DNA of 63,786 bases, filler included, from Octopus bimaculoides (lineage: Eukaryota), in the NCBI RefSeq assembly GCF_001194135.2. It is 9 parts of 9 records of this genome, joined end to end, with 100 filler letters (N's around TTAATTAATTAA, not from the genome) between each part and the next. Parts side by side here need not be neighbours in the genome. Positions count along the whole stretch, not along the records: positions 1 to 9,524 come from NC_068985.1; 8 more parts are not named here. One strand, 5' to 3'. Positions 2,196-6,795 of this stretch are shown in pieces (within the stretch, counting starts at the first letter, position 1; every line of letters begins with the position of its first letter). The notes under the pieces were generated by a model. The model was not told where the DNA came from, did no database searches, and worked only from the letters and a program-made list of their open reading frames with translations. A program made the translations under genes and the position numbers.

Positions 2196-4979
2196 ACCTA
2201 CGTCCATGACAAACAAGATGACCGCTACTACGAATACCACCAAGACCGCTATTGTCACGACGAACAGAAACAATAAGAACTGGGGCAACAGGGGAAGCAG
2301 GAACAGCAGGGGAAGCAGGGGCGGTGCCATTACCATTACTTCTACCAACTTTAACCACCTTCATGATCAATACTACCATGGCCTTCACCATTAATCCTAA
2401 TACTCATCATTAGTTGTTGTAGATGTGGCATTCATTGTCACTAATATAACGATGATGGTGATGGTGATGATTATGATCATCATAATTATCATCGTGATTG
2501 TCATATCCTAAATGCCAGATATTAAAACATCTTTGTCTCATCTTCATGCAAAAAAAAAAAAAAAACAAATTTCAAACTGTGAAAAGCCTATCATTGCAGT
2601 CGTGAACTTCACAGATCTCTCACAATTCAAACGCTACTATGTTTGAAAAAGTTCACATTAGAAAATATAGTCTTTGATTTTCGACTCCTGAATAAAAGGC
2701 AGGATGGTTGCTTGACTGGAATATTGTCTACACCTCCCGCTTTCCCATTCTTGAGGGATTGTATATATATATATATANNNNNNNNNNNNNNNNNNNNNNN
2801 NNNNNNNNNNNNNNNNNNNNNNNNNNNNNNNNNNNNNNNNNNNNNNNNNNNNNNNNNNNNNNNNNNNNNNNNNNNNNNNNNNNNNNNNNNNNNNNNNNNN
2901 NNNNNNNNNNNNNNNNNNNNNNNNNNNNNNNNNNNNNNNNNNNNNNNNNNNNNNNNNNNNNNNNNNNNNNNNNNNNNNNNNNNNNNNNNNNNNNNNNNNN
3001 NNNNNNNNNNNNNNNNNNNNNNNNNNNNNNNNNNNNNNNNNNNNNNNNNNNNNNNNNNNNNNNNNNNNNNNNNNNNNNNNNNNNNNNNNNNNNNNNNNNN
3101 NNNNNNNNNNNNNNNNNNNNNNNNNNNNNNNNNNNNNNNNNNNNNNNNNNNNNNNNNNNNNNNNNNNNNNNNNNNNNNNNNNNNNNNNNNNNNNNNNNNN
3201 NNNNNNNNNNNNNNNNNNNNNNNNNNNNNNNNNNNNNNNNNNNNNNNNNNNNNNNNNNNNNNTATATATATATATATATATATATATATATATATATGAT
3301 AATGATGATAATGAAGATAGTTTCTCATTTAGGGATAAGGCCAGCAATTCTAAGGCGGGACAGTTCGTTGATATTATTGGTCCCTCTATTGGAATCTTTC
3401 TTTTATCGATTCTAAGGGGCAAAAGGCAAAACTCATCTCGGCAGTATTTGAACTTAGACCCCAAATAGCTAGGGGAATACCATACAATATTTCTTCCGAC
3501 GATGTAACGATTCTAAGGTCCAAAACATTTCCGACCCTAGAAGTTCGAAATGCGATTTAGCGGGTGTTATATGGAAACCCCCCACCCAGGTAAACTTAAC
3601 AAAAATACAATATCTAACAAGGAACTCATGGACAGACATAATATAGTATGATTGAGATTAACAGAATCATTGGTGGCTAACGTGAATCGCATAGTTGCAA
3701 TTCATTTTAGCTATTAATGATGCTAAGGCTACCTGGAGATGTAGGGAGCGGGAGAGCGAGCAAGAAAAATAGAGAAAGAGACGAAGATAAGTATATATGT
3801 ATATATGTATAAATGTGTGTGCGTGTGAGGAGAGAGAGAGAGAGAGAAAGAGAGAGAGAGAGAGAGAGAGAAAGAGAGAGAGAGAGAGAGAGAGAGAAAG
3901 AGAGAGAAATGGAGATAGAGACAGACATATAGGNNNNNNNNNNNNNNNNNNNNNNNNNNNNNNNNNNNNNNNNNNNNNNNNNNNNNNNNNNNNNNNNNNN
4001 NNNNNNNNNNNNNNNNNNNNNNNNNNNNNNNNNNNNNNNNNNNNNNNNNNNNNNNNNNNNNNNNNNNNNNNNNNNNNNNNNNNNNNNNNNNNNNNNNNNN
4101 NNNNNNNNNNNNNNNNNNNNNNNNNNNNNNNNNNNTAATAATAATAATAATAATAATAATAATAATAATAATAATAATAATAATAATAATAATAATAATA
4201 ATAATCATGACAATAAAGAAAAATAAAACAATGAGGCCACATTATTCTGAGCACCCTAAACTGATTTATTTTGTCCAATTTCCAACAATGAAACTAACTT
4301 GCATCCAGAAGGCAACAGAATAAAGAAGTCGAAGAGAAAGCAAACGCTGTAAATTATTATAATAAACATTCGGTCTTTCTCTTTTAGTTCGTTAGAGTGG
4401 CAAATCAGTTTATGAGAAATAAAAATACATTGTTCTGTAAGCTTTTATCTTTGTCGTTGTTGAATACACATAAAAAATACATGCGCACTCACAAATGCTG
4501 ACTCTAATTACAGTCTTTTATACACACATATGCAGGAATATACACTCATAGACACAATTTTATATTCAGAGACTCTTTTAACCTCTTCCCGCCAACATAC
4601 ACACGTACACAGATGCGCGCGCATATATAAACAAGGAGAATTTCAGAAGTTTTGAGACTTTTTCTCTAATCTCTTTCAAAGTAGGACCCTCTGACATCAA
4701 TGTACATATTGTAATGCTGCAGCCCCTAGGTGAAGACCCCCATGGAAGTCCTTCATAGTGAAGGGGTCCAAGGACCTTGGCACAGCCTTTTTCATCTTGT
4801 CCTTCATCTTGGGGAACAATTAGAAGCTACAGGGAACAAGGCCTGGACTGCAGGGAGGGCGAGGGNNNNNNNNNNTATATATATATGTAGACGGTTGAAA
4901 AGGAACGCACAAGTTGATAAGTATAAGGAAAATAACACAAGGTAGAAAATGCTAAAATAATTTTATCATGAAGAACATT

Positions 4980-5294
4980 TTAGTCACCTGTATGAATACG
5001 TTTGCATGCTGTTACCTGACCACTTTGAGAGAATGTTTGTCCGCATATATCACAGTCATATGACTTCTCACTGTTAAGTGATCACTTCCAGAGAATGATT
5101 TAAAACAGATATCACAGTGATGTGGCTTCTCTCCTGTGCGACTTCGTTTGTGTTTTCTTAATTCACCAGTCTGAGAGAATGATTTACTACAGGTATCACA
5201 ATAGTATGATCTTTTAAGTTTCTCAAGAAAATTCAATACTTCTAAACTATGACTTCAATTGAAACTTATTCTCATATAATTCGGTTTCCATCAT
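4980..5294 (-). pseudogene. C2H2 zinc-finger pseudogene (three fingers, internal stop, finger2/3 linker deleted)
   Basis: MMETELYENKFQLKS* ... [46 protein letters not shown], frameshift, then [29 protein letters not shown]. Confidence 0.9.
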
Positions 5295-5774
5295 TTTTCT
5301 TTATCACCAAATTTTCAAGATGTTTATCTTCTTTTCATTTATGTACTTACTTGCTAATAAATATTTATAGTACTGTGATCCTTGTCAATACATGATCTGG
5401 GTTGCAAACCCCTTTATAAGTCCATCCAAGTTTAATTCGGATGCAAAATAATCTTGTACACATTTCAGACAGTCAAGAAGACATTCTTAACAATCTCAGT
5501 CCAGAATTAAATATTTGGCAGTAATATTTCAAAGATTTATATAAGAAGAATTATATCTGTTCTGTATAACATTTCCCTTTGAGTCTTTTGAACAATAATA
5601 AATATTGATGATGTATATAGTTCTTAGATGCCAATGTCATTTGTTATTCTGTTACGCTACACAAATTTGTGTTTATAATGGAATGACTTGAATAAAAGAA
5701 AATGACACTTTCAGGATACCATTCATTACGAAGTATATTTCCACAACCTGTGAAAATTTGGTGATGAAAGAAAA

Positions 5775-6037
5775 ATGATGGAAAATGAATTATATGAGAA
5801 TAAATTTCAATCTAAGTCACAGTTTAGAAGTATTGAATTTTGTAGAGATATAAATAAAGAGAAACTTAAAACATCATATCACTGTGATATTTGTAGTAAA
5901 TCATTCTCTCAGACTGGTGAATTAAGAAAACACAAAGTCACACATGAGAGAAGCCACATCACTGTGATATCTGTTTTAAATCATTCTCTAGGAGTGATCA
6001 CTTAACAGTGCACAAACGTATTCATACAGGTGACTAA
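5775..6037 (+). pseudogene. C2H2 zinc-finger pseudogene (two fingers, frameshift in first linker); inverted paralogue of 4980-5294
   Basis: MMENELYENKFQSKSQFRSIEFCRDINKEKLKTSYHCDICSKSFSQTGELRKHK, frameshift, then EKPHHCDICFKSFSRSDHLTVHKRIHTGD*. Confidence 0.9.
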
Positions 6038-6795
6038 AATATTCTTCATGAGAAAATTATTTTTACATTTTATATATGTATATATACATGCATATATGGG
6101 TACAGGACATAAAAAAAATGTTAAACACAATGAGAAATGAAAACAGAAAAACGAAAACATAGAAAACGAACTTTTTTTCGAACAACGAAAAAAAACAAAC
6201 AAACAGAGAAACGAGACATGCAACATAAAGAGTTTAACCCTTCTTCAGTTGTCCCTGTTTCATCTACTCTGCGTTTCGAAGGTAAGGACAATACGCGACT
6301 TCGTTGAAACAGTCCTTCCCGCAAAGCAAATTAAATAAAATTTGCGATTTTTTGTGGAGGGTGAAAGTGTTAACAAGAACAGGACAGTGAGAACAAGACA
6401 GTAAAAAGAAACGGTGAGGGTTGTAGAGCCAAGACGATGGAAAAATTATTATGAACGCAAGGAGGACGAGCCATGAGAGGAGACAGGAAAAGGCACGTCT
6501 TTTCTTTTGGAAGGAAATGGACAGAAAAATAGATCCCCTTTCGTCACGTGTCAGCGACGAGAGTGTCAAGGAGGAAGAATGAGAAAGAGAGAGAGAGTGA
6601 ACGGTGAAGAGGAGAGGAGAAGAATAGGGAAAGGGTGGGAGAGAAAAACTGAAAGGATGAAGAACAAGAGAGGGAGAGAGATAGACAGAAGAAATAGTAG
6701 AGATAGAAGAAGAGTGCGCATCGTAGTTATTAAGGCAAAACTTATTTGGAAAAGGATGCGTTCGATCATATAATAATATAAATAATATATACATA

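Follow-up and report, generated by a model that had tools for sequence, protein, structure and literature searches.

The inverted pair of C2H2 zinc-finger (ZNF) gene fragments at positions 4946–6071 of the window (63,786 nucleotides of Octopus bimaculoides DNA from assembly GCF_001194135.2, in nine joined parts, of which the first, positions 1–9524, comes from NC_068985.1) is best explained as a non-functional relic of a local duplication within an Octopus C2H2-ZNF cluster, a reading to which we give a probability of about 80%. The lack of function is suggested by the decay of the copies, and nothing points to more than an ordinary pseudogene left over from gene-cluster duplication. As found, the pair matters little, being one more decayed by-product of the turnover behind the large coleoid ZNF clusters.

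The repeat search resolved the inverted repeat as four gapless pieces (I15, I17, I18, and I19) with 80–94% complementarity. When the left arm was reverse-complemented and aligned to the right arm with MAFFT, 281 of the 305 aligned positions were identical (92.1%), the differences comprising 16 transitions and 8 transversions (K2P 0.084), and 81 of the 386 stem columns were gapped or unpaired as a result of independent indels. The longest perfect runs between the arms measured 44, 43, 28, and 21 nt. For the gap-free contig 4876–6969, the top-scoring inverted self-alignment reached 314 bits vs 26.6 ± 3.4 bits (maximum 38.3) in 100 first-order Markov resamples, and chance is ruled out as the source of the match at 4946–6071. 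The two arms have a common 5′ boundary ~24 nt ahead of the ATG, at GAAAATTTGG, and a common 3′ boundary 34 nt beyond the GGT GAC TAA stop. The non-ZNF tail that follows the stop (34–36 nt) was present only in the two arms within the 162 kb of Octopus sequence sampled. The tail was also considered as the natural 3′ end of the family genes, and this was rejected, as the O. sinensis ORFs end differently and nothing matched the tail.

Since no N occurs inside 4876–6969, the entire structure lies in one contig, which bears on the very unlikely case that separate paralogous fragments were misjoined in inverted orientation by short-read assembly. The region is indeed repeat-rich, and the piece that holds the pair has five N gaps, one of which (4866–4875) is only 70 nt from the left arm. 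However, the arms differ by 8% plus four indels, where artefactual palindromes are near-identical, the exon of the left copy runs unbroken into the spacer, and the junction with the right arm falls in non-repeated sequence.

Judged from their sequence, both arms correspond to the opening ~115 codons (the N-terminus and two to three fingers) of the Octopus C2H2-ZNF “MMENELCENK” subfamily. They contain C-x2-C-x12-H-x3-H fingers joined by TGEKP-type linkers, the pattern by which C2H2 membership was defined, and a frame-corrected conceptual translation matched the Pfam families zf-H2C2_2 (E = 2.5e-17) and zf-C2H2 (E = 1.1e-12), with single-arm ORFs passing too. The best protein matches were all from Octopus, begin with MENELCE..., and span 99% of the query. 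Among 5.8 billion protein clusters, transcriptome-derived assemblies included, no ORF exceeded ~71% identity to either arm, and exact look-ups of the left-arm ORF at 5012–5236 (minus strand) and the right-arm ORF at 5775–6005 (plus strand) returned no record in the protein collection. Eight comparison loci were fetched, all of them paralogous (four from O. sinensis, three from O. bimaculoides, and one from O. vulgaris), and neither an orthologous locus nor a closer parent gene was found among these. The closest relatives outside the arms were two tandem genes of O. sinensis locus L001 (75–82%), and each arm is closer to the other (92.1% identity) than to any sampled paralogue (at most 82%).

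The O. sinensis relatives with uninterrupted ORFs encode 398 amino acids with 13 fingers and 1018 amino acids with 35 fingers. Neither arm retains an intact ORF of a C2H2-ZNF family member, as there are at most three fingers, a premature stop, and frameshifts. The truncation, together with the TAG and two frameshifting deletions of the left arm and the frameshift and finger loss of the right arm (Table 1), makes both arms pseudogene fragments. By codon position (1/2/3), the 21 differences between the arms number 5/7/9, and this low-power test reveals no clear third-position excess.

Table 1 Features of the inverted pair, in positions of the whole window.
Feature	Position	Strand	Basis or remark
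Left arm	4946..5323	-	Gapped alignment to right arm
Left-arm 5′UTR (24 nt), then ATG	ATG 5294-5292	-	Alignments and three-frame translations
Left-arm N-terminal region and three decayed C2H2 fingers	within 4946..5323	-	Alignments, translations, Pfam zf-C2H2 and zf-H2C2_2
Left-arm nonsense codon TAG at codon 16	5249-5247	-	Translation
Left-arm 14-nt deletion	near 5225/5226	-	These 14 nt are retained in the right arm at 5844-5857
Left-arm 22-nt deletion, finger-2/3 junction	5069/5070	-	O. sinensis outgroup alignment
Left-arm ancestral-frame stop TAA	4982-4980	-	
Left-arm non-ZNF tail (34 nt), common to both arms	4946-4979	-	
5′UTR portion of the left copy's coding exon	5324..5651	-	Homology to O. 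sinensis paralogues
Rest of spacer (94 nt)	5652..5745	.	Only weak similarity to paralogues; inverted-duplication junction at right end
Right arm	5746..6071	+	Gapped alignment to left arm
Right-arm ATG	5775	+	Alignments, translation
Right-arm 76-aa ORF, one finger retained	5775-6005	+	
Right-arm 4-nt deletion, frameshift	5934/5935	+	Bases present in the left arm at 5145-5148
Right-arm loss of exactly 84 nt (one finger unit)	6010/6011	+	O. sinensis outgroup alignment
Right-arm ancestral-frame stop TAA	6035-6037	+	
Right-arm tail (34 nt), common to both arms	6038-6071	+	

The arms are separated by ~420–430 nt, most of which (5324–5651) is homologous to the stretch that precedes the start codon of ZNF paralogues, with ~80% identity to those of O. 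sinensis. Positions 4989–5651 of the window aligned to O. sinensis locus L001 with 75.7% (3773–4471) and 74.3% (9641–10339) identity. A 430-nt marker made of the 5′UTR and N-terminus was 80% identical to two O. sinensis genes and was detected more weakly at the O. bimaculoides, O. vulgaris, and second O. sinensis loci fetched. The homology to the paralogues begins right after an acceptor-like site, which reads TTTTTTTCTCTACTGTTTCAG followed by AATAACAAATG in O. sinensis and AACAG followed by AATAACAAATG at 5652/5651 in the window. This position is a putative splice acceptor of the left copy's exon, with a polypyrimidine tract that is degraded in the window vs O. sinensis, and the remaining 5652–5745 is probably what is left of the intron upstream of that exon. 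No palindromy was found to extend into the spacer (score 19 vs 19.2 ± 2.3 in shuffles). The homology of the right arm to the paralogues begins only at 5746, and that of the left copy reaches 330 nt further upstream, which makes the right arm a partial copy. Likewise, the identity of 5324–5651 as the 5′UTR of the left copy suggests that it was a truncated gene fragment that had a sub-segment copied in reverse.

The sequence-only reading had described a head-to-head pair of C2H2-ZNF pseudogenes with arms at 4956–5317 and 5752–6064, common ends on both sides, and independent deletions. The pair is real, with arms slightly wider than proposed, and polarization with the O. sinensis outgroups places deletions of 14 and 22 nt in the left arm and of 4 and 84 nt in the right arm. 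The same reading had placed a ~430-bp unique spacer between the arms; the size stands, but the uniqueness does not, given the homology of 5324–5651 to the paralogues.

We propose that the pair arose in three steps. A multi-finger “MMENELCENK...” ZNF gene would first have been truncated after its third finger, leaving on the minus strand only the beginning of the coding exon, made of a splice acceptor, a ~357-nt 5′UTR, the ATG, the N-terminus, and three fingers, with unrelated sequence behind it. A ~380-nt sub-segment of this remnant, reaching from 24 nt ahead of the ATG to 34 nt beyond the new stop, would then have been copied in reverse ~420 nt upstream, possibly through a fold-back or template-switch replication error, the usual outcome of which matches the product. 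No microhomology could be demonstrated at the duplication junctions, which are too diverged to align uniquely. Finally, both copies would have drifted neutrally to ~8% divergence, the left one gaining its nonsense codon and the 14-nt and 22-nt deletions after the inversion, and the right one its 4-nt deletion and the loss of a finger unit. As the derived truncation and the tail are common to both arms and the tail is absent elsewhere in the 162 kb, the truncation would have preceded the inversion. The independent decay of the arms, the three large bulges of the stem, and its 81 unpaired columns argue against selection on pairing. As a counterpoint to the relic reading, two perfect duplex stretches of 43–44 bp survive.

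In silico folding predicted a long, interrupted stem on either strand (−489.6 and −510.2 kcal/mol), in line with the fold that the sequence-only reading had foreseen for a read-through RNA; a hairpin on both strands follows from the repeat itself. If one RNA covered both arms, these would pair into imperfect dsRNA of ~305 bp that encloses a loop of ~420 nt, and the most natural route to such an RNA would be a minus-strand transcript in which the right arm lies within the former 5′ intron of the left copy. Its expected fate in octopus would be promiscuous ADAR hyper-editing, not dicing into siRNAs, and the hairpin, if transcribed, would not imply any regulatory role. Of the animals surveyed, octopus gave the strongest hyper-editing signal, most of it from paired inverted repeats (PMC5625713, PMC9068888). 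As in primate Alu pairs and octopus SINE pairs, the two similar copies lie in opposite orientation within ~1 kb and would give long dsRNA if present in one pre-mRNA (PMC5625713, PMC9068888), but the arms come from a host gene exon and not from a mobile element. An editing hot-spot at the arms would be plausible only in a transcribed region, and it would then be one among roughly a million octopus hyper-editing sites in paired inverted repeats (PMC5625713).

It is very unlikely that the hairpin has been kept as a functional ADAR substrate, for example acting as a sponge, masking the left splice acceptor in its loop, or retaining a host transcript in the nucleus. Such a role would fit the very high octopus ADAR activity on paired inverted repeats (PMC5625713, PMC9068888) and the location of the putative acceptor (5651/5652) in the predicted loop. 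However, nothing sets the pair apart from the many other inverted pairs (in the Octopus ZNF-cluster DNA sampled, one was counted per ~25 kb when arms of ≥120 nt and ≥80% identity no more than 5 kb apart were taken), the decay of the arms looks neutral, the polypyrimidine tract at the putative acceptor is degraded, and no host transcript is known.

In mouse oocytes, endo-siRNAs arise from inverted-repeat pseudogenes, and the birth of plant miRNAs has been described by an inverted-duplication model. In Drosophila, hairpin RNA (hpRNA) loci include Dsim-hp58, an inverted fragment of CG17385 exon 2, and hp-Nmy/Tmy, which act against Dox (PMC10317233). A read-through transcript of the octopus pair might similarly be diced into small RNAs silencing many ZNF paralogues through the conserved finger/linker sequence, though we regard this as most unlikely. 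The layout is the same as that of the de novo Drosophila hpRNAs built from inverted gene fragments (PMC10317233). In both cases, part of a protein-coding gene whose family is expanding fast has been duplicated in inverted orientation, the arms are a few hundred bp long, the loop measures a few hundred nt, and the whole sits close to the parent gene cluster or inside it; the octopus repeat is a long one of this kind (305 positions, 92.1%, 314 bits), with a stem predicted on both strands and perfect duplex runs of 43–44 bp. Of the 306–358 21-mers of an arm, 14–16 have an exact counterpart in O. sinensis paralogues and 77–120 have one within two mismatches, while 2–3 are exact in an O. bimaculoides locus (~50 kb of target DNA sampled). 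With ~4–5% of the arm 21-mers exact in paralogous ZNF genes, targeting would be physically possible.

Against this stands the smallness of that same exact fraction, only ~4–5%. Moreover, molluscs, O. bimaculoides included, are reported to be without the siRNA-class Dicer and Ago on which the Drosophila loci depend and without an endo-siRNA pathway or signature, no Dicer-pair signature being present in the O. bimaculoides libraries, which come from arm tissue only (PMC12479628). The arm ORFs are absent from the protein collection, which gives no evidence of a transcript, and the head-to-head layout would leave neither copy's own promoter able to produce the hairpin. Active young hpRNAs are near-perfect, unlike the octopus arms, which are 92% identical with large bulges and a stem decayed through independent indels to 81 unpaired columns, and unlike the Drosophila loci the pair is known here from its sequence alone. 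The proposal of the sequence-only reading that the arms yield endo-siRNAs is thus disfavoured by the published mollusc small-RNA data (PMC12479628). Nor is the pair the undescribed regulatory device that had been suggested, since inverted repeats of gene fragments whose hairpin RNAs act on the parent genes form a class already described (PMC10317233).

A remote variant would have the pair co-transcribed, for example in a minus-strand RNA whose former 5′ intron, that of the left copy, contains the right arm, with the single mollusc Dicer cutting the perfect 43–44-bp stretches and the resulting small RNAs loading into a miRNA-class Argonaute. If true, this would amount to the birth of an animal miRNA or siRNA by inverted duplication of its target gene, and many ZNF paralogues would be damped through the conserved linker sequence. 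Processing of the hairpin into small RNAs would also bear on whether molluscs truly lack endogenous RNAi and on the origin of the many new octopus miRNAs, the octopus lineage having gained 90 new miRNA families (PMC9699675).

That the pair is a transposon of the foldback or MITE-like kind, with terminal inverted repeats of ~350 nt and captured ZNF sequence, is scarcely credible: the shape, with long terminal inverted arms around a ~420-nt core and ~1.1 kb overall, would suit such an element, but no target-site duplication was found (AAGGTAG precedes the left arm and ATATATG follows the right one), a host gene exon is collinear with both arms and with most of the core, and the arm tail, seen only twice in the 162 kb, had no more copies in the eight Octopus loci, a small sample.

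Vertebrate KRAB-ZNF clusters contain duplicated pseudogenes and gene fragments. The same holds for the coleoid tandem C2H2-ZNF clusters, the pseudogenes of which are duplicated (unprocessed) (PMC12513265, PMC9068888), and the relic that we favour here resembles these in being a truncated copy that keeps the start of its exon and the intron boundary, with frameshifts and a nonsense codon, in the gain or loss of whole 84-nt finger units, and in its location among family-specific sequence. It differs from them in that the fragment was also duplicated in reverse onto its own upstream region. The pair offers a clean worked example of how a cluster sheds fragments, as a gene is truncated, part of it is duplicated again in reverse, and whole finger units come and go.

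Elsewhere in the piece, the ORFs of at least 75 amino acids were of low complexity or crossed N gaps, none being gene-like, and a tRNA scan found none. Rfam searches at permissive E-values gave no match in 4946–6071. Three weak, sub-threshold Rfam matches lay outside this interval and are probably due to chance.

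The head-to-head arms, classed as zinc-finger pseudogenes in a sequence-only reading, did prove to be C2H2-ZNF fragments. Once frame-corrected, their conceptual translation reads as three C2H2 fingers preceded by ~34 aa of N-terminal region (Pfam zf-H2C2_2, E = 2.5e-17; zf-C2H2, E = 1.1e-12). A protein search returned 156 homologues at E ≤ 1e-5; of the four strongest, three are proteins from Octopus sinensis or O. bimaculoides and the fourth is an unnamed ENA record. Several Octopus matches share the start MENELCENK, with a query coverage of 99%. None of the 156 exceeded ~71% identity, so neither an arm nor an orthologue of one is an annotated or called protein, and an exact protein look-up found no record of the arm ORFs. 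The nearest DNA relatives found were two tandem genes in O. sinensis (locus L001, CM016888.1), which are uninterrupted single-exon ORFs of 398 aa (13 fingers) and 1018 aa (35 fingers), meaning that the arms span no more of such a gene than its opening ~115 codons.

The 1018-aa, 35-finger ORF (L001 9998-13054) lies at the site of NCBI model P0002, a 172-aa protein splicing across 8.4 kb; this model may greatly under-represent its gene, as may other short Octopus ZNF models among the homologues. Downstream of gene B at the same locus lies a further stray piece of the family, an isolated stretch of 49 nt (16900-16948) that matches the start of the coding exon in this subfamily (AATAACAAATGACATTGG...) at 92% identity.

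Lesions were polarised against the O. sinensis genes and three-frame translations. Judged from these alignments, both arms are dead through independent lesions, and the deletions previously described as independent are indeed different in each arm (see table). The right arm keeps a 76-aa ORF with a single finger (5775-6005). In a four-way alignment, the coding differences between the arms fell 5/7/9 at codon positions 1/2/3, a spread compatible with neutral drift though of low power (n = 21); the left arm carried the derived state at 15 and the right at 6.

Features of the inverted pair and surrounding sequence (window positions unless a locus is named; L001 and L008, O. sinensis; L002, O. bimaculoides)
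Feature	Position	Detail
Left-arm lesion	5249-5247	TAG, codon 16
Left-arm lesion		14-nt deletion
Left-arm lesion		22-nt deletion at finger-2/3 junction
Right-arm lesion		4-nt deletion after finger 1
Right-arm lesion		loss of exactly 84 nt, one finger unit
Inverted-repeat piece I15		127 nt, 80%
Inverted-repeat piece I17		82 nt, 90%
Inverted-repeat piece I18		79 nt, 94%
Inverted-repeat piece I19		78 nt, 92%
N runs	2778-3262, 3934-4135, 4866-4875, 6970-7241, 8574-8859	
SINE-like interspersed repeat	950-1199, 1372-1514, 7503-7734, 8181-8397; diverged copy 3317-3467	4-5 copies, both orientations
~180-nt repeat	6780-6969, 8441-8573; L008 17428-18433	abuts two N gaps
~210-nt interspersed repeat	8860-9071; L001 13225-13427 / 13864-14066; L002 14586-14911 / 15092-15397	
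Long microsatellites	176-356, 3830-3925, 4136-4216, 9387-9504	(ACT)~60, (GA)n, (TAA)27, CAC-rich tract

The inverted repeat, recovered by repeat search as four gapless pieces, is real: the best inverted self-match of 4876-6969 scored 314 bits, whereas 100 Markov resamples gave 26.6 ± 3.4 (maximum 38.3). The arms lie where first proposed, but those limits were slightly too short, the full extents being 4946-5323 (-) and 5746-6071 (+). In a gapped alignment of the reverse-complemented left arm with the right arm, 281 of 305 aligned positions were identical (92.1%), with 16 transitions and 8 transversions (K2P 0.084), 81 gap columns in four indels (1, 14, 4 and 62 nt) and longest perfect runs of 44, 43, 28 and 21 nt. 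An assembly error is improbable, as 4876-6969 is gap-free and no N run lies inside the structure.

The spacer had been called unique, but its left part, 5324-5651, has homology to paralogues. On the minus strand, 4989-5651 aligns to L001 3773-4471 (75.7%, 704 columns) and 9641-10339 (74.3%), and a marker at 5215-5651 shares 80% identity with each gene across 430 nt and is weakly detectable upstream of other family members at three more loci (O. bimaculoides, O. vulgaris and O. sinensis). In O. sinensis this homology starts directly 3′ of TTTTTTTCTCTACTGTTTCAG, a textbook 3′ splice site, and the window carries AACAG at the matching position (5652/5651); we infer that, in the left copy, 5324-5651 is the 5′UTR part of the coding exon. 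Homology of the right arm to paralogues starts at 5746 and no earlier, and the spacer has no residual palindromy, so the left copy is the longer fragment and the primary one, part of which was copied in inverted orientation to give the right arm.

Both arms finish with HTGD-stop and an identical 34-nt tail, which bears out the shared 3′ boundary first noticed, where the O. sinensis genes carry further fingers. No other occurrence of the tail was found across 162 kb of sampled Octopus DNA, indicating that truncation preceded the inverted duplication. A ZNF gene fragment would thus have been truncated, then duplicated in inverted orientation, perhaps by fold-back or template switch, a mechanism suggested by the product, after which the arms would have diverged by ~8% and gained independent indels. 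No microhomology is visible at the junctions, which are too diverged. A ZNF gene fragment, truncated, partly duplicated in inverted orientation and since decayed, is our preferred reading of the pair, at a probability of about 80%; this adds a new, unannotated example to a kind already known.

The pair had also been proposed as a candidate for an undescribed regulatory device, either an editing hot-spot or a source of endo-siRNAs; such a function found no support here and, in the case of siRNAs, is disfavoured. Folded in silico, 4940-6080 forms a single long interrupted stem on both strands (-489.6 and -510.2 kcal/mol); the inverted repeat alone accounts for this fold, which does not speak for a function. 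Among the species surveyed for hyper-editing, O. bimaculoides gives the strongest signal (1,053,826 sites), and an exceptionally large share of its loci could form long dsRNA; across the species studied, such structures arise mostly where neighbouring inverted repeats pair (PMC5625713). Repeat-directed editing is widespread over tissues (PMC9068888). In 152 kb of fetched Octopus ZNF-cluster DNA, roughly one inverted pair (≥120 nt, ≥80% identity, members no more than 5 kb apart) was counted per 25 kb, and all those found match interspersed repeat families, not ZNF sequence. An edited hairpin here would be one of very many, and a functional editing or dsRNA element is unlikely.

A hairpin-RNA source is slightly less likely still. 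Besides the stem, some arm 21-mers match paralogues exactly, but these are few (14-16 of 306-358 at L001 and 2-3 at L002; 45 to 120 have a site at ≤2 mismatches across these loci), so that targeting, though physically possible, would be limited. As the copies are head-to-head, neither one's own promoter could make a hairpin and outside read-through would be needed, most naturally on the minus strand, with the right arm within the left copy's former 5′ intron. Moreover, when Dicer and Ago/Piwi factors were surveyed in 35 genomes and small RNAs were sequenced, O. bimaculoides included, the machinery for miRNAs and piRNAs was found but neither a Dicer nor an Ago of the siRNA class. Signals of Dicer pairs were lower than in siRNA-making species by a factor of five or more, and the authors conclude that molluscs lack a dedicated endo-siRNA pathway (PMC12479628). 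Nor would the device be undescribed, since the same idea, inverted repeats of gene fragments whose hairpin RNAs target the genes they came from, is a described class in Drosophila (PMC10317233). A foldback transposon is the least credible origin, given the collinearity with a host exon and the absence of a target-site duplication (flanks AAGGTAG and ATATATG).

Outside the ZNF fragments the piece holds no convincing gene, and microsatellites and five N runs make low-complexity sequence much of it. The SINE-like copies, in which neither ARAGORN nor Rfam found a tRNA, give more inverted pairs (for example 1018-1090 with 1442-1514, 82%, 351 nt between; 1040-1134 with 8229-8323), and another copy lies at L001 6171-6407. 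The ~180-nt repeat has several copies in most fetched Octopus loci (87-96% identity) and forms a head-to-tail array of period ~166 nt in L008; its family is probably satellite-like or derived from a SINE, and it likely explains why the assembly breaks at its two N gaps. In O. vulgaris (L004, OX597841.1), annotated ZNF models at 6031-9953 (-) and 10001-10423 (+) stand head-to-head, 48 nt apart, and bear no relation to the window's pair; inverted repeats at that locus match the repeat family of window 6790-6969, not ZNF. In O. sinensis and O. bimaculoides loci the ~210-nt repeat forms close inverted pairs, with identities of up to 97% and a separation of 437 nt; as candidates for dsRNA these surpass the ZNF pair.
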